From Azolla caroliniana (lineage: Eukaryota; Plantae; Polypodiophyta), in contig JBHGNT010000020.1 of NCBI GenBank assembly GCA_043228905.1, positions 6,758,001 through 6,822,000 on the forward strand: DNA of 64,000 nt, read 5' to 3'. Of this stretch, positions 2,324 to 41,200 are shown one piece after another. Every line of letters begins with the position of its first letter. Position 1 is the first letter of the stretch. The notes under the pieces were generated by a model, which saw only the letters and a program-made list of their open reading frames with translations, was not told the origin of the DNA and ran no database searches. Made by a program: the position numbers and the translations under genes.

Positions 2324-4255
2324 CCCCGGTCGTGTGCTTCCTGCAGTTGGCGGGTGAATCTCTCTCTGGATGTTGATAGTACGATGTTGATTCTCTCGGT
2401 TTTCGTCCGCATTTCTTGGATGGTCGACTTGAGTTTTGTGATTTTGTTGGTGTTGGAGGCCGCATGTGCTTCATACCGTGCTTTTACCTCTTGCCAGAGC
2501 TTTGATTCTTTTGCGTGCAGTTCCTCTAGTCGACCCATTTCATTATTTAATCGCACTTTGAATTCTCTCGTCATCTGGCGCTTGATCTCGATTTGCTCAT
2601 CGTACCATTGTAGCTTCTTTTGCACGGCCTCTCATAGTGCCGCAATGATCTCTTCAGATAGACCAACTTCTTCCGTTTGCTTGTTAAGTGCTTCGACCGT
2701 TTGTTTGTGAGCCGTGATTTTGGCGTCCAACTTGTCTTAGATCTCCTTCATGCCTTTCCTTGCCTTGGCCCAAATCTCCGTCTTCCGATCCGACGATTGT
2801 CGGAGTTTGGAGCGGAGTCTCTCGATTTCCATTTCGGCGAGTTCCACCGCTTTTTTCGCTTTGGCCGCTATCAGTGTCTGAGCTTCGACTTCCTCGGTCA
2901 AGCTTTTCATTTCGGGTGTTGGGGAGGCTGCGGTATTGGTTGAGGATGTTTTCTCCTATAGGCAACACTCCAACTCTTTGATCTTCCTTTGGGCCTCTTC
3001 AAGCTTGCTTGTCGAGTTGTTTGGCCTTCCTCGCGCTCTTGTTTTTACAGACCATATCTTTCGCTCTGTGCCGTACTGTGGCAAGCTCCCGGTGTACCTC
3101 GACTAAGGGGATGTTCCATGGGGGAACCTCTATTCCTACACGCCCTTCCTCTACGTTTCTCATTCGGGTGATTTTGCTCAGGGCGCGGTCATCTTCTCTT
3201 TCCGCTACTCCGGCCAGAGCTTGCTCAATCATCTGCCTTTCTGCATGTTCCTACACCATGCATTGCGAGACTTTGATTTGTTGCATCACCAAGAACTCCA
3301 TGATTTCGAAGGAGGCGCCAAATTGCAACAGGGCCGCAAATTCATGGGCCACAACTAGCATCTCCGAGTAGGCCATTACAACATTATCTAACGTGAGGAT
3401 GCCCTTGCCTCCTCTCTCCGTATTCCCGGTCAAGATTGATTGAGACCGCGGAATTTCTTCGAACACCTGCGTGGGCTCTGCCTCGGCTGATACTTTAGTG
3501 GCAGGTTATGGGGCCGCGTCTTTTGCCAAACCCCAACCTTCCTTTCGATCTAGCCGACGACGTTTGGGTTTGGGGTTGCTCGGTTGCTTGTCGGTGTCTT
3601 GGTTCGTAACGGGGGCAGACTGCTGCTTGTTTCGTGTGATGCTGAACATCGGGGACTGTGTGCTTCCATCCTCCTCCCATTCTGTTGTGTTGAGTTCTTT
3701 GAGCCGCCGCTTCTATTGTCACGGGCCTGGTGATGGGCGGGCCGCCCCTGGAGCTGGGAAAGTCGATGGGGAAAACAATATTGTGAAATATTGTTGTATA
3801 ATTGGGCGGAGCTTCTTACCTGTCTGGAAGGCATGGAGTCCTTCGTGTAATGAAGAACCTAGTCAACGTCGCGGCCCTCGAAGGTTGAAATGATGATGCC
3901 ACCCTTCTGCTTGGGCATCTCATACGCGTTGGGTGTACGCAACCCACCTCCAGTAGGAACTTCGCGAGCTTGCGGAAGAACAGATAAGGGGCATCCATTG
4001 TTCTGTATTCTTTGGCCGAGAGGGAGTATTCGCCAAAGTATCGTTCGAGGATCTTTGCGGGAGGGACTTCGAATTGGCGTTCCCTTGTAGCGGTCATGTC
4101 CAACTTCTTGCAAACGTCACATTCGTGATCACATTTATTTGCATCGCCATTTCTTGGGAGTTGGGGTGAGTCAGTGCTTTCGCTACCTAGATATATCCAG
4201 TGAGGCCGTGGTCATGGAGACACCGTTGTAGAGCAGGGGAGATTTCGATCGACAT
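2324..4255 (-). pseudogene. Extra ORF (aORF) of Gypsy A: conserved globular N-domain plus coiled coil
   Basis: ATG at 4255; LHDHGLTGYI; RYFGEYSLSAKEYRT; EDDRALSKI..AKDM; coiled-coil fragment 2275..2625. Homologous to the B and D aORFs. Confidence 0.8.
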
Positions 4256-4954
4256 GGCTACTTCGGTGTGGGTGCGTAGAGGGGGTTGTTTGTGTGGCGT
4301 GCAGAGCGAGGAGAGCTAAGGCAGCTTCTAAGGTGTGTAGAGTGAGAGAAATGGCTCGAATTACCATTTTGTAAGGTGGGAATGCCAATGTTCAAGATTC
4401 GTCGAGTCATGATGTCCACGCGTGTGACTAGAGCAGGTACTTGCTTTCCTGGGATGTGCGTCTGCATGCAAGATCTTTCTCTTTTTTTTTTTTTCCCTTT
4501 CATACCTAACGGTAATGGCTGTTAATATGTTACATTAATATTACATTATTACACAGTGGGGTGCGTATTAATGTGGGGTGGATCCACCGCCCAAGATTGA
4601 TTTGGTAGGGAGTGGGCCGACGTTTTGACCCGTTAACTCCGCGACGTTCCTGGATGGATTTGGGGATGTGGGTCCCAAGTATGGTTTGAGTTGAAAGCCA
4701 TTGACCTTTGTCGTAAAAGTTCCTCGGCAAGAGTGCCAAGCTTGAAAGTGTCTTTTTCGACGCCGACTATCCAATACGGCCCCGTCCACCAGAATCGGAG
4801 TTTGCCCAACATTTTTCCCATGCGTGTTTGGAACATATCTCGTTACCCCCGCGATGATCCACATGGAAGAGGAATTTCCGGCCCAGTAGGTTGTGACGAA
4901 TTTGTTACCGGCCGGCAAGGAGTCCAAAATACGGAGTGAAGGAATTAATTAAGT

Positions 4955-7042
4955 ATGGTTGTAAATAAGCATAAGATCCGGTGGCACAGCCGGATGCTCC
5001 GTCACTTGGCTGACTTGGCTACACCATTACACACCGCGGTACATCGAACACCGTTCCAATGGACGGATACGGAGGATAAGGCATACAATGCCCTGAAGGT
5101 ACTTTTGTCGCAAGCACCCGTCGTGCAGCCTCCGGATTGGAGCAAGGAATTTCATGTGTTCGTTGACGCTTCCGACATCGCTATCGGCAGCGCCTTAATG
5201 CAACTTACGGAGCCCAAATGGTACCGGCCGGTATATTACGCCAGCCGGAAGCTGTCCCAAGCGGAGAAGAACTATTCGACTACGGAACGGGAGGCCCTGG
5301 GCATGATCTACAGTGTCACAAAGTTTCGTCATTACCTATTGGGAAGGAAGTTCTCCTTTCATGTGGATCACTCGGCGCTCCTGTACTTAGTGTCCAAGGC
5401 GTCCCTGACCGGTAAGTTGGCCCGTTGGACCTTGCTGTTGCAGGAGTTCGAATTCGAGATCTTCCACCGGCCCGGTATCCAGCATGCCGTAGCAGACTAC
5501 CTGAGCCGGTTAGAGTCCGGAGAATCAGGCGACGGAGTATCGGATGAATTCCCGGACGCAGAGTTATTCCGTATCACCCCGGAAACGGTAGCGGACGACA
5601 CGGTGGCATCAGAAGATAGGTGGCTGACAAACATGCACCAGTTCCTAAGCACGGGCCTGCCACCGGAGGAAATGAACCGGGACGAGAGGAAACGACTGGC
5701 GGTGCAGAGCCGCAATTTCTGTCTGTTACGGGACACTCTCTACCACAAGGGAGCAGATGGAATATGGAGACGGGCAGTCCGTAGTGACGAGAAACAAGTA
5801 ATCTTACGGGAAGCACATTGTGGGGTTGCCGGAGGACACTATGCCGGGGAAGCGACGGCAAGGAAAGTATGGCAGAGCGGCTTATGGTGGCCCACGACGT
5901 TAAAAGACGCCGTCAAGTATGCTAAGGAATGTGACCTATGCCAACGAATGGGCCAGCCTACGGAGCAAGCACGGATGCCACACCAACCGGTACTTCCACT
6001 AGAGCCATTCCAGAAGTGGGGGTTGGATTTTGTCGGACCGTTCAAGCCACCGGCAATGAGAACGGGTAATCGTTATGTCATCGTGGCAACAGATTATTGC
6101 ACTAAATGGGTGGAGGCTAAGGCCCTGAGAGACAACACCGCGTCATCCACAGCAAAATTCCTGTACGAAAACATTTGGTGCCGATATGGATGTCCGATTG
6201 AATTAATCAGCGACCAAGGAGGGCACTTCCTCGGCCAGGTAGTTGAAAGCTTAACAACGTTCTATGCTGTGGTCCATAAACGGAGCACACCGTACTACCC
6301 ACAAGCGAACGGGTTAGCAGAGTCCACCAACAAAACGCTGCAGAACATTCTCCGCAAAATCGTCAATGAAAACCGGACGGACTGGGATACAAAGCTCCAT
6401 AGCGCGCTATGGGCGTACCGAACGGCATACAAAACAAGTATCCGGACAACACCGTTCCGGTTAGCGTTCGGCTTAGAGGCGGTCATGCCGGTGGAATTTC
6501 AGGTACCAAGCTTACGGATCCAACTACGGGAACGGCTGAATGAAAAGGAGTCGGAGGAAAGGCGGCTAACAGCACTATGCGAACTGGAGGAGCAACGGCT
6601 GGCCAGCATCCTACACATGGAACTGGAGCAACGACGACGAAAAGCGTTCGTTGACCGTCACCGGAAAGGTAATGAAAAGATGTTCGAAATCGGGAAGCCG
6701 GTGCTAGTATTCCAAACAAGGATGGGCAAGATGCCGGGTAAACTCCGGTTTAGATGGACAGGCCCGTATTGGCTGACACGGGAATACAACGGGTCCTATC
6801 AGTTAGGGACACTTGCCGGTGAAGTGCTAGGCAAGTGGGTCAACGGATTTAGACTAAAGCCCTATAAAGGACCGATGCCAAGTAACCCGTTTATGCAGCC
6901 CACCGGCACTATACCGGGAACCTGTCCGGGAACGGTACGGATGGAAGAAAAAGACGACGGGGAACCCGTAGCAGAGGCGAAGGAAGACACGGCAACCCGT
7001 AAGGAAAACGGTAAGGGTCCGAAGGGACCTACGGATGTGTAA
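4955..7042 (+). CDS. Open pol remnant: RT C-terminus, RNase H and integrase (695 aa)
   Basis: FHVFVDASDIAIG; NYSTTEREAL; HCGVAGGH..CDLC zinc finger; WGLDFVGP, ISDQG, NGLAE (DDE). Confidence 0.93.
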   Translation: MVVNKHKIRWHSRMLRHLADLATPLHTAVHRTPFQWTDTEDKAYNALKVLLSQAPVVQPPDWSKEFHVFVDASDIAIGSALMQLTEPKWYRPVYYASRKLSQAEKNYSTTEREALGMIYSVTKFRHYLLGRKFSFHVDHSALLYLVSKASLTGKLARWTLLLQEFEFEIFHRPGIQHAVADYLSRLESGESGDGVSDEFPDAELFRITPETVADDTVASEDRWLTNMHQFLSTGLPPEEMNRDERKRLAVQSRNFCLLRDTLYHKGADGIWRRAVRSDEKQVILREAHCGVAGGHYAGEATARKVWQSGLWWPTTLKDAVKYAKECDLCQRMGQPTEQARMPHQPVLPLEPFQKWGLDFVGPFKPPAMRTGNRYVIVATDYCTKWVEAKALRDNTASSTAKFLYENIWCRYGCPIELISDQGGHFLGQVVESLTTFYAVVHKRSTPYYPQANGLAESTNKTLQNILRKIVNENRTDWDTKLHSALWAYRTAYKTSIRTTPFRLAFGLEAVMPVEFQVPSLRIQLRERLNEKESEERRLTALCELEEQRLASILHMELEQRRRKAFVDRHRKGNEKMFEIGKPVLVFQTRMGKMPGKLRFRWTGPYWLTREYNGSYQLGTLAGEVLGKWVNGFRLKPYKGPMPSNPFMQPTGTIPGTCPGTVRMEEKDDGEPVAEAKEDTATRKENGKGPKGPTDV

Positions 7043-7440
7043 GATCACATACCGTCATTAAAAAGAGAGAAAAAAAAGAAAAAAAGAAAAAAAGAAAAGA
7101 AAAGAAAAAGAAATCATTAAAAATCGAGGTATGAACGGACGTGAAAGCAAGGAGCGAAAAGGTACGTAGTGGGCATTTAAGAGCCGCCACATTACTTAAT
7201 ACTAAATTGGTACACGACGTGCGCATGCTCGAAAAAGGTGCCAAGACGCACAGAGAAAAAGAAAAACGCATGGAGACCTTTTTTTTTCGCGAGCCAAGAA
7301 GCACAGAAGCACCAAGGCAGTGGAAGCTTAGCAAACGCGAACCTGCACTCAGAGAACCCCCACGTTCGGAACGCTCTCTCTCTCGCTCTCACTCTCATCA
7401 CCACTCTACCTCGCCATCTTTCCTCGACCTCGAAGCAGAC

Positions 7441-10110
7441 ATGGAACCACAAACGCTGTCGGAAGCGGCCAGGAAATGGCTCAGGCAACACGGACTGGAT
7501 GGGTTCTTGACCATCATGGAGGCACCACCGCACAAAGAAGCCGACCAGGTCATCAAGGAGCTCGACAAAGAAGTCATCACCGAGGAAGCGATCCGTGCGC
7601 TAACAGGCCTTCCGGAGGGAGGTATTTTTCAGATTGATAACCCAACGTCGGAGCAACTCATCCGATATTTCGGTGAGTACTCTGTAGCCGGCAAAGGCTA
7701 TCGAACGTAGGGCGGCGAAGATCCGCTATTCAGGGAGATAGCTCGAGTGCTCCATGAGTACGGCCACGTGTACCCCCGACCCCCTGTCATGCCAAAAAAT
7801 CGGGCAGGGATGATCATAGCCACCTATGAAGGGATCAAGGTGGATTGGCCGGTGTTGATTGCAAACGGTTTGTGCGCGGCAATCGACACGGTACGAGGAA
7901 AGGACGGCAAGGAGGGCCGGAAGCTGTGGCATGCCGTAGCTCAGTGGATAACATTGCTCGCGCCGCCGGTCGAGACCGTTCAGCCAAAGAAGCGGCCAAG
8001 ATTATCGGAAGGAAGCACCTCGAAACCCGCGTCCAAACGACAGCAGCTGCTGGCGTCGAAGGCGACGAAAGGGAAGAAACGGCTCCCAGAACTGGAGGAG
8101 GTGTCACCGGTCCGACCCGTTAAGATAACCATACGGCGACCGGGATAGAAGGAACTGGAACCCTTGACGGCACAGATACATGCCGCTACCCAGGAAGAGG
8201 AAACGGAGGAGCCAGTAGAGCACCTCCAACGACGGTCAAGAAGTAGGACTGCCGGGACAGCGGGGGAGCGTTCAGACCCGCAAAAGGAAGAAACGCCCCC
8301 AACTCAACCTGAGCAAACCACAAGGGAGGAACCGGAACCGGTGCGTATAGAACCGGCCTTGTCGACTTCTACACAAGAAGTCATTCCAACGGCTCCGGAG
8401 ACGGTGAGAACCGGAACTCAACAGCCGGCGAGCCCAGCCAGCACACACGGCGGCCAAGGAGTAGAACCAGAACGGCAGATACAGGCACTCAGGCCAGACA
8501 ATTCCACAGTGAACGAGCCGACCCGACCAGTACAGCAGCAAGGCACCAGTAGCATGTGGCTACGGTGGGTAGGCGAGCAGATCGCCGGAGCGGTTGAGTA
8601 CATAGAGGCGGAGGAGAGAGCGCACCACGAACGGTTGCTCGTCACAACCGTAGATCTAGAGACGGCCCGGTCTAGAATCCGGAGCCTTGAACAAGACTTG
8701 GACAGGGTCACAAGGGAAATGGCTCAATTGGCTTTGACAACACAAGTCCAAGCACCGGTGACTCCGGGCAATGTACAGAATAAAGCATCAGATCAACCTG
8801 TACATAGCAATCAGACCCCGGCAACGGAAACCGTTCCGGAGAGAAATGCGGCACAAGCCCAAGAGCTTGCGGACTTAAAGGATGAGCTAGCTGCCCAAGA
8901 AGCGCTGAGGAGCCGCGAAAGAGAGTTGAAGACGGCAGCGGAGGCAGAACTCAAAAAGACTGCTGAGAAGCTACGTTGGGCCGAGGAGAGCTTACGAAAA
9001 GGCCACCAAGCGTACGACCGGCTCAAGGAGGAGAAGGAGAAAATGCTGCAAGAGAAGGATAGGCTCCGGAGAACCGCCGAAACAGAAGTAGAGCGCCTGA
9101 AAGAGGAACTCCGGCAGGTAAAGGACCGGGAGGACCGGAACCATCGCCAGATCAACGGCAAGCTCAAACAAAAAACGGAGGAATTTGAGCACTTGCACCG
9201 GGAGTATAAACGGTTGCAAACGGAGCACAAGGAACGGACGGATGAGCTCCGGCAAGCAGTTGATCGGACCGCAACGGCATACGCTAATGAACAAGCGGAA
9301 ACCAGAAGACGGTTGGAAGAGGCGGAGAAGGTTCGGACAGAGCTCCTCAGGCAACAACAGGCGGAAAAAGAAAGAGCGGCGGAGGTACTGCAGAGGCTGC
9401 AAACAACATATCAAGGGCAGCTGACGCGCTACAGAGAGCAGGCGGAGGATACGGCTAATCTCATCAAGCAGTTGAAGGAGGAACGACAAGTTGTGGAAAG
9501 TAGAGCGCAAATGGGAGCAAGTCGCATCTAGGATATCATGCGAGCCTGGTTGAACCAGACCAAGAGCTTGATTGACAACGGTTCCGTCAAATGGTGGACC
9601 AAGTGGGCCACGAACGCGGCGGAACTCCAATTGCTCCGGGCCGACGTAGAGAACCGGCGGAAGGAGGGAGATGATTGCTATATGCTGACTTCCGAAGACT
9701 TCACCGGCATAAGAGATGAGCTGGCCGAAGACTTTCAAGCCTTGGCAGAGGACCAACTAGGGCAAGTCCGGCAACTTGTAGCTCAGCTGGACGACGACAG
9801 GCTGGAGGCGCAGATCCAGTTTGAAAGCTACGAGAGGTCCCGGATCCGGGAAGAGAAAGCACGAGAACCGGTTACGGTCAACCTCAGTGATGAGGAACCG
9901 TTACTGGAAGGAGACCGGACCGGAAGCAGTCAAACGGAGATGCCAGAGTCAGAGAAACAAACGGAGCAGCCGCCTATAGAGCAGCCGGAGCAGTCTCAGT
10001 CCCAACCGCAACCACAACAGCAGCAGCAAGCACAGCCGCAACAACCACAACCGGAAGAACAATTGGAAACTCTGGAACAAAGTATTTTGGACAATTTGGG
10101 TGAACAATGA
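7441..10110 (+). pseudogene. Extra ORF (aORF) of Gypsy B, ~889 codons in one frame with three TAG stops
   Basis: ORFs 7141..7710, 7747..8148, 8164..9531 and 9538..10110 share one frame. The ATG at 7441 aligns with the D aORF start. Confidence 0.88.
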
Positions 10111-10122
10111 AGGGGCCGAGAA

Positions 10123-10160
10123 GGGTTCGACGTACAAGGTACTGTCCCACGGGCGTGCCA
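10123..10160 (+). other. tRNA-Arg 3'-half-like motif ending in CCA at the PPT position of B
   Basis: GGGTTCGA-CGTACAAGGTACT-GTCCCACGGGCGTGCCA, 2 nt before the 3' LTR. Confidence 0.85.
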
Positions 10161-10162
10161 TG

Positions 10163-10581
10163 TGTTACCGGCCGGCAAGGAGTCCAAAATACGGAGTGAA
10201 GGAATTAATTAAGTATGGTTATAAATAAGCATAGTGTGGACGGACGGACTGGAAACGGTATGCCGTTCCAGATCCGGACGGATCCCGAATAGGTGCGATA
10301 GGCACCGTTTTGTACTACGGGCCGGAAACCTATTTAAAGGCCCGGACCCCATTGTAATCGCAGCGGATAATTAATAGAGCATATGGTGTTTATACTTCTG
10401 TGTTGATTTCCGTTCTGTAATTACTGTTATATCTTACGCGTGTAATTAACAAAAGCGCTCTAATCGTGTAACCTACTTAAGTCGGTGTAATCGTTGAGTC
10501 ATAATCCTATGCCGTAATCACCCTTTGGTGAAGTGTCTCCGTGACACCTTGTGTTAGGCCTTGTCCGGTCAGAGAATAACA
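10163..10581 (+). repeat. 3' LTR of B (419 bp)
   Basis: TG..CA termini, followed by the TSD; TATA-like CTATTTAAAG near 10330. Confidence 0.93.
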
Positions 10582-12091
10582 GAATTGTTTTGATACTATA
10601 TATCATACCCAACGCTTTGCGCTTGGTCGTGGAGTAATTGCGTTCAATGACTGAAAGCTTCTGGCTCGAGTAATAGATTGGCCAATATCAATTTGGTTCA
10701 GTCAACTGCATAAGAGCATTGCCGATCACTATTTCCAATGCATCTACGAACACGTGGAACGGTTGTGTCCAATCCGGTGGTTGTACGACCGGTGCCTCAG
10801 TTAGCATGACCTTTAAGGCCATGTACGCCTTGTCCTCCGTTTCGGTCCAACTGAATGGTGTTCGATGCACCGCCGCATGCAACGGTGTCACAAAGTTCTC
10901 TAGGTGGCACAACATGCGATTGTGCCAGCGGATCTATCCCAGGAATCGACTTAGGGCCTTCGCGTTCTTTGGGGTCGGGGCCTCAATGATGGCCTTGATC
11001 TTCCTTGGATCAACTGAAATGCCTTCACGGCTTACTATGCGTCCGAGGAGAGCACCAATTGTCACGCCAAATGCTCATTTGGCGGGATTGAGGCTGAGTT
11101 GTGCTGAGCGGCATCGCTCTAAGCAAAACCGTAAGTGCCGTAGGTACTCGTCCCGCACCCCATACATTGCAAAATTGTCGAGGAAAACCTGCATAAAGGC
11201 TAGTATGTAGTCGCCGGAAATTTCTGTGATGATGCGCTGAAATGTCGCAAGCGCCGTTTTAAGCTCGAACATCATCACTACGGCTACGAATATAGCCCAC
11301 TTTGTCACGAAAGTTGTCTTCTCTTGATCGTCGGGATGCATACGGATCTGATTGTAGCCGCTGAAGCCACCTAGAAAATTGTACATTTCGTCCCTGGCTA
11401 CGGCGTCGAGTACGCCATCCATGAATGGCAAGGAAAAGCATTTGTTATGGTTACCGCATTCAGTTTACGATAGTCGACGCAGACTCGAATTTTACCATTC
11501 TTCTTCGGTACGATGACAATTGGAATTAGCCAAGTTGCGTTCTTGACAGGTCGGATAAACCCGATTTTCAAGAGTTTTTCTATTTCTTCTTTGATGCGAG
11601 CCGTGTAATATAGGTTCATGCGATAATGTCGTTGTTGAATAGGCTTTACATCTGGTGCCAGGTTAATTTGATGCTGGTAGAATTTGGGGTCTAGTCCCTT
11701 CATATCCTCGTGGGGAGAAGCGAATACATCTTTACATTCGTACAATAAGTCGATCATGGTCGTCTTTTCCAAAGGAGGTAAGTCCTTCACGACGGAGAGA
11801 GGACACAGTGCGTCGGAAGTCCCAACATTGATTTCCTCTAATGTTGACGTCGTGACACGTCAAGATATCTCCATTTCTCACTCTAATGCGTCTTGCGCCC
11901 CACGGAGTTCCATGAGGGCCTTCGTGTTGGGTTCATAGTCGTCGTCGCCTGTTGCAAGCGTAGTGTATGTCCCTACCATTTCGATGACATCGATTTCGAA
12001 CAAGGGAATGATGCGAGGGTTCTCTTGCAGATAATTTTCCAGTTCCTCGTCATCTAATCCCTCTAGCATGTGGGCTTCTTCCACGTTGTAT

Positions 12092-14100: not shown

Positions 14101-17100
14101 ATGGATAGAGGCATGGCTAGCTCGCTTCCGACGGAGAAGCTCGATAGAAACAACTACGCGTCTTGGTCCTACAAGATGCACCAATACCTGCTCGGGCACG
14201 ATTACTGGAGTTATGTTGACGGAGCAAATGACACGGCACCCGAATTGACACACAGAGATTTCCCGGCGTGGGAACAGTCGGGGAGCAGAGTACTGTACTG
14301 CTTCGCATCTTGTGTGGGCGAACAACTCTTAAGCTACATTTGGGATGCAAGAATGTCGAAAGATGCTTGGGGAAATCTGAAGAATATTTTTTCCGCAAGC
14401 ATTACAACCAGGAAGCTTCAACTCCGATTGGAGCTGAGCAACCTACGACAACGTGACTTGTCGGTGGCAGACTACACCTCCAAAATCAAGGACATTTGTG
14501 ACTCTCTGGTCTCCATCGATGTAAATATTGAAGAAGCTGATATGGTGCAAATCTGTCTCGGAGGTTTGGCGTCAAAGTTCAGAGCGTTCCGAACTGCTAT
14601 GTGTACAAGGGAAAATACGCCGTCATTTTTCGACTTATAGTCGATGCTCCTTGTAGAGGAGAACCACGCTGGTGCGTCAACAGGTGCACCCGCTGACAAC
14701 CGGATGCTATATGCGGAGGCAGATCGGCCCCGTGGGTGTGGTGGACGAGGCGGGTCAGCTCGCAATGGGAGCAGCTGGCGAGAGCAGGACCGAAGGCACA
14801 GAGAATGTGCCGACATCAGTTCCGGACCCTCCACAAGCAGGGGGAGTCAAGGCGGCGCCAGATGCCGGCAAGAAAAGGCTGACACGGAATGCTGGTACTG
14901 TGGTAAAAAGGGCCACAGAGAAAGCGAGTGCTGGAAGAAGCGCGCCGATTCGGATAGATCCGGATCCGGCAAGGCCGACAGAGAGAACCGGCAATACTTG
15001 CACTACGTAGAAGGATCGGGAGGATCCAAAACCGGAAAAGCCGATAAAGGGCCAGCCTTGGTGATGAACCACGAGGCTAACTTGATGAAGAAGACTACTT
15101 CCAAATCGGAGGAAGTGTGGTACGTTGATTCCGGTGCGTCAAATCACATGACGAGCCACAAAGAGTGGTTCTCTTTCTTGGAGAAACCGGAACAACCGGG
15201 AGTCGTCGAAACCGGAGATGACACTCCTCACCCAATCGTGCATATTGGAGAAGTCCCTTTGAGCCACGTCGGACAGAGGGGGAAGATGATGAACGTATTA
15301 CACGTTCCGACTATCACGAAGAACCTGGTGTCAGTCGGTCAGATCATTGACTAGGGGATGCAGGTGTGGTTTACGCACCTTGGGTGCTTCATCGAGGAAG
15401 AGGGCCAGATTATTGCGCAAGGGTGCATATATGGGAGGATGTTCATCCTTGACACCAATGACGTCGACACCGCTTTGTTTGCCAAAGAATAGAAGATTGA
15501 ATTGGATATTGATCTCTGGCACAAGCGGATCGGCCATGTCAATTACCGGAGGCTTCAAGACTTGCAAACGAAACAAGTTGTTTTCAGTTTGCTGAAGTTT
15601 AGTGGTCAGAAGGCCAAAATATGTGAAGCTTGCCAACTCGGGAAGCAACACTGGCTTCCATTCCCCAACAAACGAAAGCGTAGCTGTAACAAGCTCGACC
15701 TTATTCATTCGGATGTATGGGGATCGGCACAGAACGTTAGTCTTGGCGGGAGTCGGTATTTTGTCTCCTTCATCGATGACTACAGCCGGCGCACGTGGAT
15801 CTACCTCATTGAGTGAAAGAGTGAAGTCTTTGAGTGTTTCCGGAACCTGCAAAGCCTGGTTGAACAGGAAACGGAGAGGAAGATCAAGTGCCTACGGTCG
15901 GATGGCGGAAAAGAATATTTTTTCTGGCCAATTTAACAATTATCTACAGCAAAAAGGAATTCGGAGAGAGTTCAGTTATAGATACACACCGGAGCAAAAC
16001 GGTGTGGCCGAAAGGAAGAACCGGTCGATTGTCAACGTGGCAAGGGCAATGCTGGAGGAGAAGAGCATGCCCCATTTCTACTGGGTGGAGGCGGTCCTGA
16101 CGGCCATCTACATCCAAAACCGGATCGGTAACAAGGTGTCCGCACATGAGCTGTATTTCGGATGCAAGCCGAATTTGAGACACCTTCGGATATTCGGTAG
16201 CATTGCATATGTGCATGTGCCGGATGAGAAGTGGAGGAAGTTGGATGCAAAGTTGGAGAAATGCATCCTGGTCGGTTACTCGCATGAGAAAAAGGGGTAT
16301 AAGTGTTATAACCCCCAGACGAAGCAGGTCCGAGTTAGCCGGGATGTTGAGTTTGATGAGACGGCCTCATGGTATGCCTTACCGGCTCCGACTTCCAACC
16401 CCGACCTGATACCAAAGGATGAGGTTAGTGAGCATGAGCCGGTCCAGCTAGAAGATGAAGACCTCGGCACTCTAGAAGAGAGTCTGATCCCATTTCGGTT
16501 AAGTGGACCGAATGAGCGGCTGAGTCGGGATGACCAGTCGGATGAGGAATTGGCGAGTAATGGAGACTCTGCCGTGCTCTCCCCGCGCAAGGAACCGAGG
16601 AGACGGTTCACGTGAAAAGAGAAGGGGAAGAAGAAGATGCCGGAATACGAAACCGACAACGTTGAGTCGGATCGGAGCTAATCCAACTCTGGAAAGGATG
16701 AAGGTGGATCTTTAAGAATGACGTCCAAACCGGCCAAGAAGGGCCTCAAACCGGGTAACGATAAGTTACGTCGGTCTTCCCACCAGAAGAACCCCGTGAA
16801 GCGGTACGGGTACAATGAGTACATGGTGCATCACTATGCGTACATGACCAAGGTGGCGGAAGTGTGTGAACCGGAGAGGTACGCAGAAGCGGCAAAGGAC
16901 GCAAATTGACGTGCTGCTATGGAGGAAGAGATGTGGGCACTTGATGCCAATGACACATGGGACCTACTTGACCCTTCCCGACATTGTAAACCGATCGGAT
17001 GTAAGTGGGTGTACAAGGTAAAGTAGAATGCCGACGGTTCGGTTAACCGGTACAAGGTCCAGTTAGTGGCGAAGGGATACGCGCAGACCCACGGAATTGA

Positions 17101-17680
17101 CTACGACGAGACCTTCGCTCCGGTAGCGAATATGACGACGGTTCGTGTGGTGCTGGCGGTTGTTGCGGCAAGGGGGTGGCATCTTCACCAGATGGACATG
17201 AAGAATGCATTTCTTCAAGGTGATCTTGACGAAGAGGTCTTTATGACCCAACCCGTCAGAGATGAACAAGTCAGCGGTATGCCGGCTGAAGAAGTCACTT
17301 TATGGCCTGAAGCAAGCCCCCCGAGCTTGGAATGCGAAGATCACGCACCGGTTGTGTAAGATGGGGTTTGCGGCCTCCAAGTCTGACTCTTCGTTGTTCA
17401 TTCGGCAAGGTCCGGACGGTCCGGTTTGCATCTTGTTGTATGTTGATGATCTAGTCATCACCGGACCCGGACTCGATGAAATGAGCCGAGTCAAGTCCTA
17501 GTTGTCGGACGCATTTGAGATGAAGGACTTGGGGGAGCTTCACTATTTCCTTGGGATTGAGGTGATCCGAACCCCCGATGGCATATTTCTCTCACAAAGA
17601 CACTATGTGTTGAATATGCTGTACAAGTTTGGCATGATGGAATGCCGACCGATCACCACACCCCTGGACCCGAACCAGAA
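14101..17680 (+). pseudogene. Copia C gag-pol (gag, CCHC, protease, integrase, RT) with many stops; resumes at 38695-~39380
   Basis: CWYCGKKGHRESEC; WYVDSGASNHM; IHSDVWG; NGVAERKNR; LLYVDDL. Confidence 0.92.
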
Positions 17681-18141
17681 TGTTGTCCAGAGGATAGAAA
17701 TGTAAAATTAGGAAATTAGCAAACGCCGAGTCCGAGTATCACGGGCCACCGACGACTCGGCTGTGTATTAGGGGAAAAGTTATTTAAACGAGGACCAGTA
17801 CCTCAGAGAGGGAGAGAAGAAAAATATAGGCGGAAGCACTAGCTTAGTCCTTCGTAATTAGATAAACTTGTAAGGTCACCGGCCATAGGCCGTGTTCTGT
17901 AATATTTTCTGTCATAGTAATATATCTGAGTTGTACCCATTTTGCTGCATGAGTCTGTGCTTTGATCCATACCTATGAGTTCAATGCCGCCCACGTCTAT
18001 CAAGACCTCGCTAGTGTTTTCTCTTTGAGCCCTGTATCTCTCTCGACGCCTCTGTTACGAGCCTTCACATACCACGCCCTTGAAGACCGATAGCCTCAGA
18101 TCTATCGAAGGTGTTCACCCAAAGGAACGGATAACACAATT

Positions 18142-18154
18142 TGGCATGCCCGGT
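18142..18154 (+). promoter_or_regulatory. PBS, tRNA-Arg type
   Basis: TGGCATGCCCGGT, 5 nt after the 5' LTR; one C>T relative to TGGCACGCCCGGT. tRNA identity is from recalled plant tRNA-Arg(UCU). Confidence 0.75.
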
Positions 18155-18282
18155 TACAGCTGTGGGTGCACAGCGAACTTCGTTGAAGGTAACCACCAGC
18201 TGCCGTTACAACGCCCTCTCGCACTACGAGGTCTTGGCCACCCGCCCGACGCCCCGAGCCAGTCGAAGGAACTGCCGACTCG

Positions 18283-23527: not shown

Positions 23528-24310
23528 TGTCGTGAAGAATTTCGGCCAGAGGCGGAAACCGGGAAACATTGGCTACATCGACGGGGTGCAGCGTGTGTAC
23601 GCACCCATGTACATTTAGTGTGAATAACGAGGGCACCTTTATGGCGCCGAAGAGTAGTCAAGTCGGGACAGTCGATCCCATGTAAGTCGGGATTTATCCC
23701 ACATTGTAACGCATCCCTCTCCTTGTTCTATAAAAGGAAGGGAACACCCTTTGTGAAAGGGTTGCCCATTTTGCATTAGAGGGTATACTGTTAGGTTTAG
23801 AGTTAGTTTCTTCTTCTTCTTCTTCTTCTTCTCCCCCTTCGTGTTTGTTTAGGGTTTGCTTCAGCTCATCTCCTGCGCAAGACGCCGCTCGGCGCGACGA
23901 GCCCGTGAGCTCCCCGACCGGCGGCTTGGCAGCTGACGACTACTGTAACCTACCTTGGTCCGGCTCGACGCCGGGAATGTATTCTTCCTTTTATATATAT
24001 ATATATATACGTTGCGTCTGTCTGTGTATATTCGCGTCTCTGTTGGTGTCGGGTGCTTCCCCTTTCCTGCGTTTCCTGTACAAAAGGGCGTGAGTCGGGT
24101 TGGCATGTGCGTGTGTGTGCGTGTGTGTGCGTGAGTCGGTTTTAAGCGCGTGCTCCCTCTCTTTCTCTCTCTCCCTTCGATCGCTTCCGGTGTTCTTCTG
24201 GGATCCCCCGGAAACGGTGAAGCACGACTTCCTACGCTCCGTCACTCCCTAGTCCAAGACCCCCGTGGTCCCGCCTTTCTCCACGCACGCGCGTAACAAC
24301 GCAACATATT

Positions 24311-24328
24311 TGGTGAACCCGACGTGAA
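24311..24328 (+). promoter_or_regulatory. PBS, tRNA-Trp
   Basis: TGGTGAACCCGACGTGAA, complementary to the recalled plant tRNA-Trp 3' end TTCACGTCGGGTTCACCA. Confidence 0.85.
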
Positions 24329-24343
24329 AGGCGGCAAGGGAGG

Positions 24344-25225
24344 ATGGAGTCGGAAGACGACGACCTTGCGGAGATGGTGGCCGAAGTGGTGTTGGAGTCG
24401 GCACGAGTGGTGATGAGGCGAGAAGCAGCGCAACAAGCGGCTGAGCGAGTGGTCGAAAGAGTCGGCCGTTTCAACGGGGACAAAGTCCCATCTTACTTGG
24501 AAGCCTACAACGCGGAAATGGAGGAGCGTGGTGCAGACGAGGCGTTAAGGCTGGAGTTCTTCTGTCGGGTCGTGGCTGTCCGGATGCACGCGGAAATAAA
24601 GGAGCTCCGTGAGGCTCATAGTTCGTGGGAGGCCTTCGAAGAGGCGCTCCTGAAGGCATACGGAGGATGGCGGAAGAGCCGGGGACGACACGACTTCGAC
24701 CAGTGGGTAGCATCGGCAAAGACCCACCGGGGCGCTGCCAAGGCGTTTCGAGAGTTCGAGCGGCGGCTTGCTCGGCTCCCAGAGCGGGAACAAGGTTTGG
24801 TGGGGGCGGACAAGGTCCTATTGTTCGTCAGGTCGATCGACCGAACGGAACGGGAGGCCATCGGGATTGAGCTCGAAGACGATGATGGAGCGAATGGGCT
24901 TACGGAGGACTGGTCGAAGGTCGGATGGGTGTGCCAACGGCTAGACAACGAGCGAGCCAAGAAGGCTAAGAGGAAGGTACGCGACGGCGTGCCGTCACAG
25001 CGGGAAGAGGTCGAACGGCAAAGAGAGTCGGCAAGGGTCGGTGTTGGGGGCCAGGATTGCGGAGGCGTACGCAGCTCTCGAGGCGATGATCGAGGAAGAG
25101 GAAAGATGGAGGCCGCAAGCCGAGACCGAGGAGACGGACTTGCCCCACGCGACGGCGGAAGATCGGTACGACGGTACCACGGGAGAGGGTGCGGAACAAA
25201 ATGCCCTCTCGACTTGCAGAGATAG
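24344..25225 (+). CDS. Gag-like capsid protein of F
   Basis: ATG 16 nt after the PBS; GRFNGDKVPSYL..SWEAFEEALLKAY resembles retrotransposon gag. Confidence 0.65.
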   Translation: MESEDDDLAEMVAEVVLESARVVMRREAAQQAAERVVERVGRFNGDKVPSYLEAYNAEMEERGADEALRLEFFCRVVAVRMHAEIKELREAHSSWEAFEEALLKAYGGWRKSRGRHDFDQWVASAKTHRGAAKAFREFERRLARLPEREQGLVGADKVLLFVRSIDRTEREAIGIELEDDDGANGLTEDWSKVGWVCQRLDNERAKKAKRKVRDGVPSQREEVERQRESARVGVGGQDCGGVRSSRGDDRGRGKMEAASRDRGDGLAPRDGGRSVRRYHGRGCGTKCPLDLQR

Positions 25226-28200
25226 AACGACCAAGGACGAGGCCGAGATACAGATCGCGGAACCAGATAGTTGGGACCAGCGGTTTCGGGCGTGTCAGCC
25301 CGAAACCCCGGTCATTGGAGAAGCGAGCCAAGACGGGCTTTGCGCGATCGGTAAGAAGAAGACCGCCGACCACGAAGAGTCGGTGGCTACGGACAAGGGC
25401 GTAAAACGGACGGGCGATTCTTTGTGTCTTCCCACACTTGCTCCCGAGACGGTGGCAGTCGGGCCCGAGTGCCCACGTGAGTCCCAAGCGGAGGAAGGCG
25501 GCGGCGAAAGGCCAAGAATCACCGGCGAGACGATACGGGGAAGGAGCGGACGAAAGCCCACGAACCCGATTCCGGAGAACTCGGCATTCAGGCCCGTATG
25601 CCCATGGAAGACCGAGGAGATGGATGGTGGTACCGAGGAGTCCTGGCACGATGCCAGCGAAGACGGATGGGAAACGGCCTGTGAGGAGGCCGAGGACGGA
25701 AGAGGCACGAGAAGATCGGCATTCCGATTCGGATGGAACAGAATCCGGTCGCGGATCGTTCAATCGAGGCCGGATTTGGCATAAAGGTGCCGATACGGGA
25801 GAGGGTGCGGGACGAGCCGCCCTCTTTTACATGGGGAGAAAGATCGACCAGGCGAAGGTCGAGATTTGGAAGGAGAATGAAAGCCGGTCCTATAGGAGTT
25901 CCTTACCCCGATCCGGCTGCCGGCCCGAGAGCCGGTGTGAGTCCTATAATAGAGAGATTGGTGGCGACAGGAGAACGGGACTCGGCAATCTGGAGAATGA
26001 CGAACGGACCCGAGCGAGAACCGGGCGGAGCGGACTCCCGGATAACCATTCCGGGAGGGAGGAAGAGAGCTGGCCTACGAAGAGGCCGAGGACACGGTAC
26101 GTCGGGACCACGGGAGAGGGTGCGGAACAAAATGCCCTCTCGGCATGCGGAAAAGGACGACCTGGGACAGGGTCGGGAAGACAAATCAGAGGCCCACGGA
26201 GGATCCTTCACACCGGTTCTAGAGACTTCGGCGGTCGGCAACGCGGTCGACGTAAGACCAAGATACTGACGGTGGCGGCGAGGTGACGAAGGCAAAGGGG
26301 CTACGGATGGGCGGTCGGCGGAGGATCCTTCACACCGGTTCTAGAGACTTCGGCAGTCGGCAATGCGGTCGACGTAAGACCAAGATACTGACAGTGGCGA
26401 CGAGGTGACAAAGGCAAGGACGGAAGGAAGTTCGGTCCTACGGGATCCCCACACTTAACCAGAGACTCCGGAAGTTCGGCCAACGTGGCAACATGAGACC
26501 GAGAGAGAAGGTTGGTGGCGGCGGGAAACGGGACCCGACTACGCGGATGACACGAGGAGAGTCCGGGAGGGACTCAAACAAAAGACACCCGAATTACGGC
26601 AAGCATAGAAACGGAGTCCGGTCCTATGGGGCCCTCACACCGATCCGGAGACCTCGGCTGATCAGCCAATGCGGCAACGTAAGACCGATGGAGAAGGACG
26701 GTGGCGGCAGGGAACGAGACCCAACGACACGAGGTTTCGGAAGGAACGGTAGGGGCAAACGCGGGGAGGTGTGTCAGGCTGGAAAGGCACACCTGGGATA
26801 GAACAAGGGTCTCGCAAGTGGCCATCGCGGGCCGGATCGAAGCGTGACTACGGGACGGTGTTCGGCGCGGGCGGGGCCGAACGAAGGAAGCGGAAGACGA
26901 CACAAGAGAGGTGCCGGGAACGAGGTGACAAGTGCCTAGTGGACTGCACATGGTCGGAGTTAGGGGATTGCAAGAGAGGCCGGAGGAGGATCCTCCACAC
27001 TCGCTTCGTAGATCTCGGGAGATCTGTCGAAGTAGCGAAGACTGACATGGCAAGCCCGGGGTGACAAGCTGGTGGGGGCGAGGGGACGACGGCAAGCGGA
27101 AGACTCAGGACCTACTGCAGCAGCACGAAGACGGGAAGGGCGAAGCGGGCTACTACGGGGTGTTCCTCGAATGCAAAGGACACCGGTATGCGGGTGAGCG
27201 GCGATGCACGATCTGGCCGAAAAGGGGGCCGACAAGGTGTGCAATGAACCGGAGTGCGACACAGGCAGTGCCAAACAACGGACGAGGGTATGTGGCACAC
27301 GGAGGTGCCAGAGCGGAAAGGCGAGCGCGGAGATAGGTTGCGTGGTTCGGAGGTAGCGCGGAGAAGGCCGGAAAGGGATCCTCCACACTATTCCGGAGAC
27401 CATGGCGGTTCGAGCCGACGCGGCGATGTAAGACCATGGAGAAGGAAGGTGGCGGCGAAAGGACGAAGACAACGCGAAACAACATGGGACGACCATCAGG
27501 ACATCACGGTTGGACAACGGAGGCCAAGGGGGCCACTACGGGCATGCTTGAAGCGGAGGACATCGGGCATACGGCGGGAAGCGGGGCGTTCATACGGCCG
27601 AACGAGGGCCAACGAAAGTACGCGTACTACGGAGATCGCGGCAGAGGACCCATCGACGGGTCGAACGAGCCTACGGGGAGGTAAGCGCGAAGGAAGAATC
27701 GAAGCCGACGGATCAAACCGGCAGCGTGCCGGGATATCGATCACGGAAGACCGGTTTCTCACCGGCCGAAATCTCTCACCCTTCAACCAGATTTGGCACG
27801 TACCGGTGGACGTGTAGTTAGGTGGGGGCGGATGTCGTGAAGAATTTCGGCTAGAGGCGGAAACCGGGAAACATTGGCTACATCGACGGGGTGCAGCGTG
27901 TGTATGCACCCATGTACATTTAGTGTGAATAACGAGGGCGCCTTTATGGCGCCGAAGAGTAGTCAAGTCGGGACAGTCGATCCCATGTAAGTCGGGATTT
28001 ATCCCACATTGTAACGCATCCCTCTCCTTGTTCTATAAAAGGAAGGGAACGCCCTTTGTGAAAGGGTTGCCCATTTTGCATTAGAGGGTATACCGTTAGG
28101 TTTAGAGTTAGTTTCTTCTTCTTCTTCTTCTTCTTCTCCCCCTTCGTGTTTGTTTAGGGTTTGCTTCAGCTCATCTCCTGCGCAAGACGCCACTCGGCGT

Positions 28201-32087: not shown

Positions 32088-32567
32088 TGATGGGAACCCA
32101 ACGATCCTTATGCGCGATGCTCGGCCACAACCGAGCGTAGAATGATACACAGAAAACGGGAAATAAAATAGGACACAAAGGAGAGGAAGATACACACAGA
32201 CTACACAGGAGGTTTACGTGGAAAACCCCAAACTAGGGGAAAAACCACGGCAGTCCACATGCTGCAAACTGTCACTATGTAAGAATGTACAAAAAATAGT
32301 GAGTCCACGGAGGCAACAACCTCGTGCTCACGATCTTCGCCATAGGCGGCGGTTACAACAGAGGCAACGACCTCGATCTCTCTCTCTCTCTCTCTCTCTC
32401 TCTGTACAGTTACGCACTCTAATTTCGTGCAAAACAGAAAATGACAACCACAACTAAAAGTTTGCCCTAAGTCATATTTATACTAATATGACTTTTCGGC
32501 TATTTACAAATATAGCCTCGATGGGCTCTCAGAAACATATTTACGAATATGTCTCTTCCTCCGGTTC

Positions 32568-32902: not shown

Positions 32903-32966
32903 GTTCGTCGGCACTGTTCTTCTCCCTTCCCATCCGGAGGGACCTGTCTCCCAACAAACTCCCCCT

Positions 32967-38191: not shown

Positions 38192-38231
38192 GTGGGTCCG
38201 ACGGACAAGGTCCTGTCCCACGGGCGTGCCA
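38192..38231 (+). other. tRNA-Arg 3'-half-like motif ending in CCA at the PPT position of D
   Basis: GTGGGTCCGA-CGGACAAGGTCCT-GTCCCACGGGCGTGCCA, 2 nt before the 3' LTR. Confidence 0.85.
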
Positions 38232-41200
38232 GGTGTTGTCCAGAGGACAGAAATGTAAAATTAGGAAATTAGCAAACGCCGAGTCCGAGTATCACGGGCC
38301 ACCGACGGCTCGGCTGTGTATTAGGGAAAAAGTTATTTAAACGAGGACCAGTACCTCAGAGAGGGAGAGAAGAAAAATATAGGCGGAAGCACTAGCTTAG
38401 TCCTTCGTAATTAGATAAACTTGTAAGGTCACCGGCCATAGGCCGTGTTCTGTAATCTTTTCTGTCATAGTAACATATCTGAGTTGTGCCCATTTTGCTG
38501 CATGAGTCTGTGCTTTGATCCATACCTATGAGTTCAACGCCGCCCACGTCTATCAAGACCTCGCTAGTGTTTTCTCTCTGAGCCCTGTATCTCTCTCGAT
38601 GCCTCTGTTACGAGCCTTCATGTTCCACGCCCTTGAAGACCGATAGCCGCAGATCTATCGAAGGTGTTCACCCAAAGGAACGGGTAACACAGAAGCTTTG
38701 TCTCGACTCCAGACCGGCCTGCGATGAGAAGCGGTTTCGACAAATCATTGGAAGCCTTATATATTTGACAATCACCCAACCCGACATCAGTTATCTAGTC
38801 GGCGTTATCAACCAATATATGTAGAAGCCGACAGTGGAGCACCTTCTGTGCGCGCATCGAATTTTGCGATATGTGAGCGTCACGAAGGACTGTGGACTGT
38901 TATACCGGCATGGTATAACCGAAGAGCTGGTCGGCTACACCGATGGCGACTGGGCCGGTGATGCATCGGATCGCCAATCCACCTCCGACTATATGTTTCG
39001 TGGAGGAGCAAAAAGTAGCCAACAGTGGCCCTTTCGTGCACTGAGGCTGTATACCGGGGCGCTACTGTTGCCACCCGTGAAGCCATTTGGCTTCGGCGAT
39101 TGCTGCAAGACCTACGGATCGAGGTGCCGACCCCGATCCTGATCTACTGTGACAACATAAGGAGCATGCAGCTCGCTAAGAACCCCGTATTCCATGCTCG
39201 CACAAAGCACATAGAAGTGCACTACCACTTCGTGCGTGAGCGTGTTTTGAGGGGTGAAGTTGAACTTCGGTATGTTCATACGAATTGGCAAGTTGCCGAC
39301 ATCTTTACCAAACTGCTCGGATCGGACAAGTTGCAGCACTACACCAAAATGCTTTGGTGTTTAGCATATCCACGTGCCATAGTTGAGGGGGAGAACAGGC
39401 AAAGACACTGGAACGGTCAAAGGCAAAGAAACGGCCGATTGCGCTGGTGAGGGAAGAACCGACAGAGGGAGAGACAAGAAGAAGAAAGGAGCCGAGTCGA
39501 CAAAGGAAGTTGACACATCGGAACAAGTTGGAACAAGCGGTAGTGGCGGCAGAGTCAAGAAGGACAGAGCCGACCAGAAGACGAAGGCCAAGACCTAGAC
39601 ATGGTCCGATGTGGTGAAGGGCCTGGAACCGGAAGATGAATCGGGAGCTACCGATTCAGACAAGAGCTGGAACGAATCGAAGATAGTCGATTCGGTTCAA
39701 CAGATGGATTCGGAAGAACCGGATCAATTCAAGGCCAAGAGGATGAGAAGGCAACAAAAGTCGACGCCAACACGAAGGAATCGGCGAATCGACAAGCGCC
39801 GAAGTCATAGCAGCAAGGGAGTTGATTTGGGCCTGTTGAGTAGACAAGCCGACCGAGGAGGTCGAGGTGCGCAGAAATAGAAGGGTCGCGGCAAAAGGGA
39901 CCGAACCGGACGAGGAGCGTGAGCGAGGCGGAGTGACGCCAAAACTATTATTGTTTTGAAATAGATTTAACTTGTTCTGTTCTTTCTCTGTCTCTCTTGC
40001 GTACTGTCAAGCTCTCCATTAAACCTGCGTTTCTGTGTTCGGTTTTCTGTTGCTTCCGCATGCTATTCGTTTTTACAGTGTGCGACCCCACACGGTTCCG
40101 ATAAAATGGTTGGGAGCCTTATTTATTTAACAATCACTTGGCTGAACCTCAGCTACCCGGTCAACCTGATTAGTCAATTCATGTCACATCCAAAGGCCGA
40201 ACACCTTTAGTGCGTGCAAAGGATATTGTGATGTGTCATCGGCACTAAGGACAGGGCGTTGTTGTATCGTGTAGGAGTAGCCACTAAGTTAATCGGCTAC
40301 ATGGACGCTGGTTGGGCCGGAAATGCCGATGATCGCAGGTCAACATCTGGGTTTGTGTTTTCATTGGGAAGCGTCACGATCGCCTGGAGTAGTAAAAAGT
40401 AGCCGACAGTGGCACTATCAAGCACTGAGGTCGAGTATCGAGGGGCGGCTGTCGTCACGTGTGAAGCCATTTGACTCAAAAGGCTACTAAAGGATTTGCA
40501 TGTAGAGCTGTCTGAGTTGATAGTCATATTCTATGACAACCTTAACAACATCCAGTTAGCGAAGAACTCTATCTTCCACGCCCGGACAAAGCACATCGAG
40601 GTGCACTATCATTTTTTCCGTGAGCGTGTCCTCTCCGGTGAAGTCGAACTAGTGTATGTTCCAACCGATTGGCAGGTTGCCGATATCTTCACCAAACCTC
40701 TTGGCCTGGAGAAGTTGCAGCAATTCTCGGGCATGCTTGGTATCTAGTGCCCTGATATGCCAAACTTGAGGGGGAGGAGTGAAGTAAAAAAGGAGAGAGA
40801 CAAAGTCTGAAGAAGAATCGAATCGGATGTAGAATTTGATTTTGGCATGACTGAAGAAGTCGGGATGTTCAGATCAGTTGGAGAAGCCGATGATGCATAG
40901 ATAGATGGAAGAAGATCGACTAAGAAGAGAATAGCCAAATGTGAGGGGAGCAGTCGAAAGAGAGAGCCGAAGCCGGAGCCAACCGAACCAAGGGGAAGTG
41001 AAGCCGAGAAGGGTAAGAAAGGCGGCAGGGTCGAAAAGGACAGAGCCAGCCGAGTGAAGGCCAAGACCAAGACATGGGCAGATGTGGTCAAGGGTTTGAA
41101 GGAGGAGGAATTGGAGAAAACCAATTCGGACAAAGCTTGAACGAATCGGAACTAACCGATTCGATCATGGGAGGTGATTCGGATGAGCCGAATTACACAA

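Follow-up and report, generated by a model that had tools for sequence, protein, structure and literature searches.

A structured tRNA-Arg(UCU)-like element at the position of the polypurine tract in a lineage of plant Ty3/gypsy retrotransposons

In a lineage of plant Ty3/gypsy retrotransposons, the last internal nucleotides before the 3' LTR are occupied not by a polypurine tract (PPT) but by a structured block that matches the 3' end of tRNA-Arg(UCU) and that ends in CCA two nucleotides before the LTR. Priming of the plus strand from a PPT has been regarded as invariable in retroviruses and LTR retrotransposons, and annotation tools rely on this tract. On the sequence evidence set out below, the block probably replaces the PPT, plus-strand DNA then starting at a primer that ends in CCA. 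This primer could be the host tRNA-Arg(UCU) itself, bound to minus-strand DNA, in which case both strands would start from tRNA CCA ends and a PPT would be unneeded; this further proposal is put forward tentatively.

The block was recognized in two elements, B and D, of a 64-kb stretch of DNA that was analysed as a whole (the window; Table 1). In both elements the internal region ends with the 5' half of a T-arm, followed by a 13-nt hairpin, the 17-mer GTCCCACGGGCGTGCCA, two nucleotides and the LTR, which starts with TGTT; the spacer is TG in B and GG in D, and the T-arm piece GGGTTCGA of B has the counterpart GGGTCCGA in D. The two copies of the 17-mer, both on the + strand, are the only matches in the window at up to three mismatches, 0.15 being expected by chance. 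Read in the tRNA sense, the motif closes the internal region; the stop codon of a long accessory ORF precedes it by 13 nt in B and by 58 nt in D. The initial annotation had described an identical 17-mer two nucleotides before the LTR of each element, between LTRs that it held to be unrelated and a T-arm-like piece with a covarying 13-nt hairpin. The coordinates and the target-site duplications confirm this placement, BLAST detects no similarity between the LTRs of B and D, and the stems GTAC/GTAC (B) and GGAC/GTCC (D) belong to a covariation that extends over 82 copies. An orientation error, by which the block would be the normal primer-binding site (PBS) of a minus-strand element, was considered since the reverse complement of the 17-mer is PBS-like; it was ruled out by gag/pol coding on the + strand and by LTR pairs with target-site duplications. 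Nor is the motif a part of the LTR, being absent before both 5' LTRs. A tRNA gene, a pseudogene or a SINE was also rejected, since only tRNA positions 49-76 are represented, with an interruption, while ARAGORN found no tRNA in the window and Rfam gave no match at E up to 10.

Table 1. Coordinates, in the window, of the features of elements B and D
Element	Feature	Position	Strand	Remarks
B	5' LTR, first 71 nt, then deletion	4903..4973	+	GAATT at 4898-4902
B	Remaining internal region: RNase H, integrase, coiled-coil accessory ORF pieces	4955..10110	+	Stop codon at 10108-10110
B	tRNA-Arg(UCU)-like T-arm 5' half and T-loop, to A58	10123..10130	+	GGGTTCGA; conserved in 82 copies
B	13-nt hairpin insert between tRNA positions 58 and 59	10131..10143	+	Stem GTAC/GTAC, loop AAG; covariation in 82 copies
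B	17-mer, tRNA-Arg(UCU) positions 59-76 including CCA, minus one C	10144..10160	+	
B	2-nt spacer TG, from CCA to LTR	10161..10162	+	
B	3' LTR, TGTT...AACA	10163..10581	+	Target-site duplication GAATT at 10582-10586; read depth drops at about 10581
D	5' LTR	17681..18136	+	CAGAA at 17676-17680
D	5' PBS, 13 nt complementary to the tRNA-Arg(UCU) 3' end	18142..18154	+	One CpG-to-TpG change; intact in relatives
D	T-stem 5' half and T-loop copy, GTGGG TCCGA	38192..38201	+	
D	13-nt hairpin insert	38202..38214	+	Stem GGAC/GTCC
D	17-mer identical to that of B, ending in CCA	38215..38231	+	
D	Spacer GG	38232..38233	+	
D	3' LTR	38234..38689	+	CAGAA at 38690-38694

The likely source of the block is represented at locus L008, where ARAGORN identifies a complete tRNA-Arg with anticodon UCU and a CCA end (L008:1190-1265, +); this real copy agrees with the tRNA-Arg(UCU) 3' end given in the initial annotation. 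The tRNA runs antisense to a D-type element, abuts the last ~110 codons of the accessory ORF without any intervening sequence, and is separated by 436 nt from the 3' motif of that element (L008:716-753); the contig ends 1 nt past the CCA. It looks like a retro-copied tRNA within a deletion derivative, produced by plus-strand synthesis through the whole primer tRNA and a subsequent aberrant strand transfer. Its complement would stand at the place expected for the PBS of a D-type element, a position deduced for this contig, which is without a 5' LTR. Compared with the L008 tRNA, the motif consists of positions 49/51-58, the 13-nt hairpin between A58 and G59, and positions 59-76, where the CACC run is one C short (CCCAC-CGGG in the tRNA, CCCAC-GGG in the motif). 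The first reading of the motif as a tRNA-Arg end is thus upheld as to its origin in tRNA-Arg(UCU) and corrected as to its exactness, one C being deleted and a hairpin inserted after A58. Methylation of A58 is known to stop reverse transcriptase (RT) on tRNA templates, so that the 17-mer corresponds to just that part of the tRNA that forms the classical PBS duplex. The derivation of the motif from tRNA-Arg(UCU), its place at the PPT position with a PBS-like 2-nt geometry, and its standing as a selected feature across the lineage now rest on data.

That B is a real insertion follows from the repeat pair 4903-4973/10163-10233, the LTR end at 10581 and the GAATT duplication. Its 5' LTR is cut after 71 nt (window 4903-4974) and fused to the RNase H region of pol; the remaining 5' LTR, the PBS, gag, protease and RT have been deleted. 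The two LTRs of D are 97% alike. On the + strand, RNase H and integrase are encoded in B, and gag-pol, in a full-length alignment, in D. Two elements are nested inside D, one (23528-28601) bearing an ordinary purine tract and the other a Copia element on the - strand (32087-37955) with a tRNA-iMet PBS, and canonical signals are therefore present within the same DNA stretch. The nested Copia interrupts the accessory ORF of D near its tail; a 54-bp tandem repeat forms arrays within the Copia LTRs (32405-32974, 37404-38027), and a related copy lies at 1-2385. Element C, which has a normal purine tract, carries TGGCACGTACCGGTGGAC at 27794-27811, about 21 nt upstream of its 3' LTR; the likeness of this sequence to the complement of the tRNA-Arg(UCU) end is probably due to chance, as matches that good are common in the window. 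B is itself inserted into element A, a Gypsy element of the same lineage on the minus strand (10592-12084 and 3026-4836). The 3' end of A is truncated by the Copia copy at the window start, and that of a fragment at ~62480-62626 likewise lies outside the window or has decayed. The long accessory ORF follows the integrase (window 7441-10110 in B; 28887-32013 and 37890-38144 in D; L062:139-3672, -). At 1177 aa in the intact L062 copy, it has no Pfam match and is coiled-coil-like and rich in E/K/R/Q, with a conserved tail of the I-L-D-x-L-x-E-E type upstream of the tRNA-like block.

Relatives were collected independently of the motif by a search with the accessory ORF piece 8164-9531, which returned eight proteins on short metagenome contigs. 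The block is present in every contig that extends past the stop codon (L002, 56% identity; L003, 88%; L006, 37%), in the layout stop, short variable spacer, GTGGG-TTCGA, 13-nt hairpin, 17-mer, TG, TGTT. The 17-mer has one change in L003 and one in L006, and the hairpin stem of L006, GTGC/GCAC, constitutes a second compensatory change besides the GGAC/GTCC of D. In L117, which comes from another sample and shows 60% identity in RT-integrase, the 3' end comprises a T-arm-like piece, a longer hairpin, CTCCACCAGGTGTGCCA, AG and TGTT; the two differences in its acceptor part are both CpG transitions. The order CCA, 2 nt, TGTT is common to B, D, L002, L003, L006 and L117. A metagenome scan with a pattern made of the reverse complement of a 16-mer, a gap of 12-16 nt and the T-arm half gave 109 stretches, all from one ENA assembly series (one study), in ~100 distinct contexts with several unrelated LTR types. 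The 16-mer and a portion of the T-arm were prescribed by the pattern, so that their invariance in this set follows from the search itself; only the hairpin, the spacer and the start of the LTR were free to vary, and sequence invariance without pattern bias is tested only by the six protein-derived loci. Among 82 distinct aligned copies the spacer is TG (40), GG (37), TA (3), AG (1) or CG (1); TGTT directly follows a 2-nt spacer in 74/82, a 5-nt spacer is found in two, and one TGTT base differs in six. In one small family (L060:116-177, -, and L065:356-417, -), 5 nt (TATTG) separate CCA from TGTT, the putative LTR start. The abundance of the block was also seen when contigs from the DNA runs of three organisms were placed on positions 9800-10700. 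In all three the block is the most repeated stretch there, with a k-mer depth 3-6 fold above the flanks in bin 10141-10171, and dozens of contigs diverge exactly before 10123 and after 10166. The depth peak and the contig breaks indicate that the block is common to many more families than its flanks. Carriers of the sequence comprise organisms labelled A-C and leaf metagenomes.

The hairpin supplies the evidence for structure. In the 82 copies, pair 23-32 is UA in 51 and GC in 29, and pair 24-31 is GC in 44 and AU in 37, with ~1% unpaired; this covariation exceeds that of all 500 shuffles and all slid controls. The stem occurs as GTAC/GTAC, GGAC/GTCC, GTGC/GCAC, GGGC/GCCC and AGGC/GCCT, with the loops AAG, AAT, ATT, AAA and TTA. 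Its nine G.U wobbles, considered as a pointer to the strand on which the hairpin acts, are all C-to-T changes in one column, a CHG site, and are explained by mutation bias. The 5' half of the T-stem is imperfect in about a quarter of the copies, and the imperfections are not compensated; no conserved local pairing partner was found for the acceptor-like strand. Single-sequence folding of the block as RNA or DNA gave z-scores mostly near 0, so that the structure is known from covariation only. A family-wide survey of spacing, PPT absence and covariation had been proposed with the original description, and PPT absence and covariation hold in the 82 copies, as does the spacing with the few exceptions given above.

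The absence of a PPT at the 3' LTR, as noted in the initial annotation, is borne out by these copies: the last 15 nt before the LTR hold 8-9 purines in 82/82, as compared with 9-12 in five elements that bear a PPT, the longest uninterrupted purine stretch of the preceding 52 nt measures 3-4 in 74/82, and the purine run at 10109-10125 of B is not conserved among copies. As to relatives with a normal PPT, a matter raised from the start, no conserved tract exists among the motif-bearing copies, but distant liverwort-type relatives do have ordinary tracts. A Riccia relative (~46% in RT-integrase) carries the ordinary tract AAAAAGGGGA, L121 carries a weak purine tract, and a Marchantia relative carries the tract GGATAGGATAGGGTG followed by CCAGG and TGTTAC. 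In Marchantia polymorpha (L119:6470-6522 and 16708-16760) the tract ends in GGGTGCCA-GG before TGTTAC, and GTGCCA-GG-TGTTAC is common to this tract and to the motif-bearing families; such sharing is unlikely to have arisen by chance (~1e-4, a rough estimate of our own). The Marchantia tract may represent a transitional or an ancestral state. The close resemblance of the tract end GGGTGCCA to the tRNA end GGGCGTGCCA suggests that the motif could have originated when RT, during minus-strand synthesis, switched from a PPT with this ending onto packaged tRNA-Arg(UCU).

The minus-strand primers of these families were read from contigs that span motif, LTR and PBS, in which the assembly presumably passed through the repeat. 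D-type elements have AACA-CAATT and then a 13-nt complement of tRNA-Arg(UCU) in which the C absent from the 3' motif is represented. In a second family (LTR ~340 bp), AACA-CA is followed by 10 nt complementary to the same tRNA, and the two junctions mirror each other (CCA-GG-TGTT ... AACA-CA-TGG). The PBSs of the B/L002-type, TGGCGACCACGA, and of L117, TGGCGACTCCGCTGGGGA, do not fit tRNA-Arg(UCU) and appear from their sequences to fit other tRNAs. With RNA parameters, which make these values rough, the duplex with tRNA-Arg(UCU) amounts to -17 kcal/mol for the B/L002-type PBS against -38 kcal/mol for the D-type PBS, and the predicted pairing of the 3' part of the tRNA with the motif complement to -48 to -52 kcal/mol against the same -38 kcal/mol. 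The connection initially drawn between the motif and the tRNA of the 5' PBS is therefore retained for the D-type and the second family, which use tRNA-Arg(UCU), and lost for the B-type and L117, which use other tRNAs. The same 3' motif is found despite these differing 5' PBSs, which indicates that it is independent of the minus-strand primer. RNA pairing between PBS and motif, considered as a general function, is ruled out by the B/L002-type and L117 PBSs. The 5' leaders of the D- and B-types share a layout of PBS, small hairpin and CAGCGAAC (18142-18185; L002:3858-3905; L062, - strand); this layout echoes that of the 3' site on the other strand, and the CGAAC of the leader, which could pair with the tRNA T-loop, overlaps other predicted stems.

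In the established model, the 3' end of the plus-strand primer sets the U3 boundary, and synthesis from this primer begins with the leftmost nucleotide of U3 (PMC5371799). With the LTR limits fixed by target-site duplications, the primer of the present elements must then end at the CCA or at most 2 nt away from it. The sequences establish how the elements are built, that the block matches the tRNA, that it is conserved in a fixed geometry, that its hairpin covaries and that a purine tract is lacking; the biochemical steps by which such a primer might be supplied are inferred. Minus-strand DNA would be copied through the motif, the complement of which would form a second PBS, on DNA, 2 nt from the U3 complement. 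Packaged host tRNA-Arg(UCU) would anneal there through 11 bp, one bulged C and a further 6-7 bp, and could possibly also pair with the T-arm half across the extruded hairpin. RT would extend the CCA-OH of the tRNA through U3-R-U5; the tRNA would subsequently be removed by RNase H, and the two extra nucleotides would be trimmed by integrase. A 2-nt offset is present on the PBS side as well in the second family and in L117, and the G of the spacer together with the C after the right LTR lengthens the terminal inverted repeat by one base, which fits integrase trimming of two nucleotides.

Whether the primer would be the host tRNA or an RNA of the element itself is the point on which the evidence divides. 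The tRNA-matching segments are frozen across families that have unrelated LTRs and as little as 37% identity in the adjacent ORF, whereas the non-tRNA insert covaries freely, a contrast that fits pairing with a fixed partner in trans. Priming by host tRNA-Arg(UCU) is also favoured by the persistence of a tRNA-Arg(UCU)-like motif even where the 5' PBS fits another tRNA, and by the use of this tRNA in the lineage, as judged from the D-type and second-family PBSs and from the tRNA copy in L008; no novel property of RT, nucleocapsid or RNase H would have to be assumed. This reading is burdened by the C missing in every copy, which would force the tRNA to bulge, and by the requirement that families with another minus-strand primer also package tRNA-Arg(UCU). 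The GTGCCA-GG of Marchantia may further hint that CCA-NG is an RNase H cleavage context inherited from the PPT, which would favour a primer in cis. In that scheme, which we consider only slightly less likely than priming by the host tRNA, the element's own RNA ending in CCA would survive RNase H and prime the plus strand: the T-arm and hairpin would fold back while the last 17 nt stay hybrid, RT would treat the complex as a tRNA/PBS initiation complex, and RNase H, measuring from the recessed RNA end, would cut after the CCA. The geometry and the absence of a PPT suit it equally well, and the missing C would be costless to a primer that matches its own template. The hairpin-CCA distance of 17 nt in the B/D-type and in L117, where a different C is apparently missing, suggests a ruler, though L117 is a single decayed copy, and the Marchantia tract with GTGCCA-GG before TGTTAC would offer a stepwise route from a PPT. 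A cis primer would, however, need a new RNase H specificity, and we know of no RNase H resistance of an RNA/DNA hybrid with the composition of the 17-mer. It also gives no obvious reason for an identity to host tRNA in sequence, rather than in fold, while the insert covaries, and the uncompensated imperfections of the T-stem half speak against it.

Two further readings dispense with priming from the motif. A role at the RNA level, in minus-strand initiation, strand transfer, dimerisation or primer selection, is unlikely; the motif would pair with the 5' PBS, or would replace the 3' strand of the primer tRNA in a tRNA-bridged 5'-3' contact as in Ty3, its place beside U3 being secondary and its G-rich end serving as a short degenerate PPT. 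Such a role is consistent with the 10-11 bp that the 5' PBS and the motif can form in the D-type and the second family, with the acceptor-like strand that lacks a conserved local partner, and with the long-range 5'-3' contacts, tRNA-mediated or direct, of Ty3 and Ty1 (PMC5371799). It leaves unexplained why the B/L002-type and L117 keep the motif beside PBSs for other tRNAs, why the distance to the LTR is a near-invariant 2 nt, and why the T-loop letters are conserved. Far less probable still is a neutral relic, inherited without function from one old RT template switch into tRNA-Arg(UCU) beside the PPT position. That RT copies this tRNA into members of the lineage is seen in L008, but a relic would hardly be kept as a block across families that differ everywhere around it, with compensatory changes at two stem pairs, a fixed spacing and no alternative purine tract.

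The lineage concerned is large and apparently successful, with an intact gag-pol copy of 1752 aa and a very high copy number in three organisms. The exchange of the PPT for a structured element that is derived from a host tRNA and that has exact PBS-like geometry suggests a mode of second-strand initiation that has not been described; for any of the primers considered, selection by RT and RNase H must follow rules other than purine-tract recognition. If the primer is the host tRNA, replication would follow a symmetric scheme in which the element depends on tRNA twice, with a bearing on control by 3' tRNA fragments and on the evolution of PBS and PPT. The PPT-bearing liverwort relatives and the GTGCCA-GG tract of Marchantia provide a way to trace the transition. 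In agreement with the opinion first expressed that no PPT-less lineage of such design had been described, no report of a tRNA-like or PBS-like element replacing the PPT was found in the literature searched, which included a survey of 13,863 plant elements (Neumann 2019, Retand 2025 and Helenus 2024 were covered).

In other respects the elements conform to a known group. They have TGTT...AACA LTRs with 5-bp target-site duplications, GAATT in B and CAGAA in D, a tRNA-complementary site after the 5' LTR, and the domain order gag, CCHC, RVT_1, RT_RNaseH, rve in the intact 1752-aa ORF of L062. By LTRs, duplications, domain order and PBS the lineage is one of plant Ty3/gypsy (Metaviridae) retrotransposons, departing from the group in that no PPT adjoins the 3' LTR in the 82 copies. 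The non-chromovirus OTA clade (Athila/Tat) of plant Gypsy elements is recognized by RT/RH/INT phylogeny, by an archaeal RNase H in Tat and by an additional ORF after pol; in the present lineage an extra 1177-aa ORF follows pol, and no match to archaeal RNase H was found. The closest named relatives in pol are proteins of liverworts, with 42-48% identity.

Among known systems, the 3' tRNA-like ends with CCA of the Mauriceville retroplasmid and of plant RNA viruses (TLS) are replication origins. There, as would be the case here, a tRNA-like CCA end marks the site of polymerase initiation; those ends, however, terminate the RNA on its 3' side and serve as templates for initiation that is de novo or primer-independent, whereas the present motif is internal and partial, consisting of the T-arm and the 3' strand of the acceptor. 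tRNA-derived sequence in an LTR retrotransposon has also been described for the Helenus TRIMs, where the LTR contains it as a Pol III promoter and the element has a normal PBS and PPT as well (PMC10886601). Replacement of the canonical primer by element-encoded RNA, as a primer in cis would require, is represented by Tf1/Sushi and TAR self-priming (cited in PMC6317226), which belongs to minus-strand synthesis at the transcript's 5' end and involves no tRNA mimicry. The bipartite PBS of Ty3 and the 5'-3' interactions of Ty1 likewise involve a tRNA-related element that is situated towards the 3' end of the genomic RNA, in the neighbourhood of U3; in Ty3, however, the 3' segment lies within U3 and is complementary to the TΨC and D arms of the tRNA, and a normal PPT is kept (PMC5371799). 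A bipartite PBS of the Ty3 type was rejected for the present motif, which is in the tRNA sense, lies outside U3 and persists in families whose 5' PBS fits another tRNA. With the minus-strand PBS the motif shares a complement that reads TGG..., the usual 2-nt distance from the LTR and, in some families, the same tRNA; it differs in standing at the 3' end of the internal region and on the other strand, where it would act on minus-strand DNA, in being one nucleotide short, and in its extension into the T-arm across a hairpin. With the PPT of retroviruses and LTR retrotransposons it shares its place, the last internal nucleotides adjoining U3, and presumably its task of starting the plus strand and setting the left end of the LTR; in place of a purine-rich run, it offers a likeness of a host tRNA 3' end, complete with CCA and interrupted by a structured insert.
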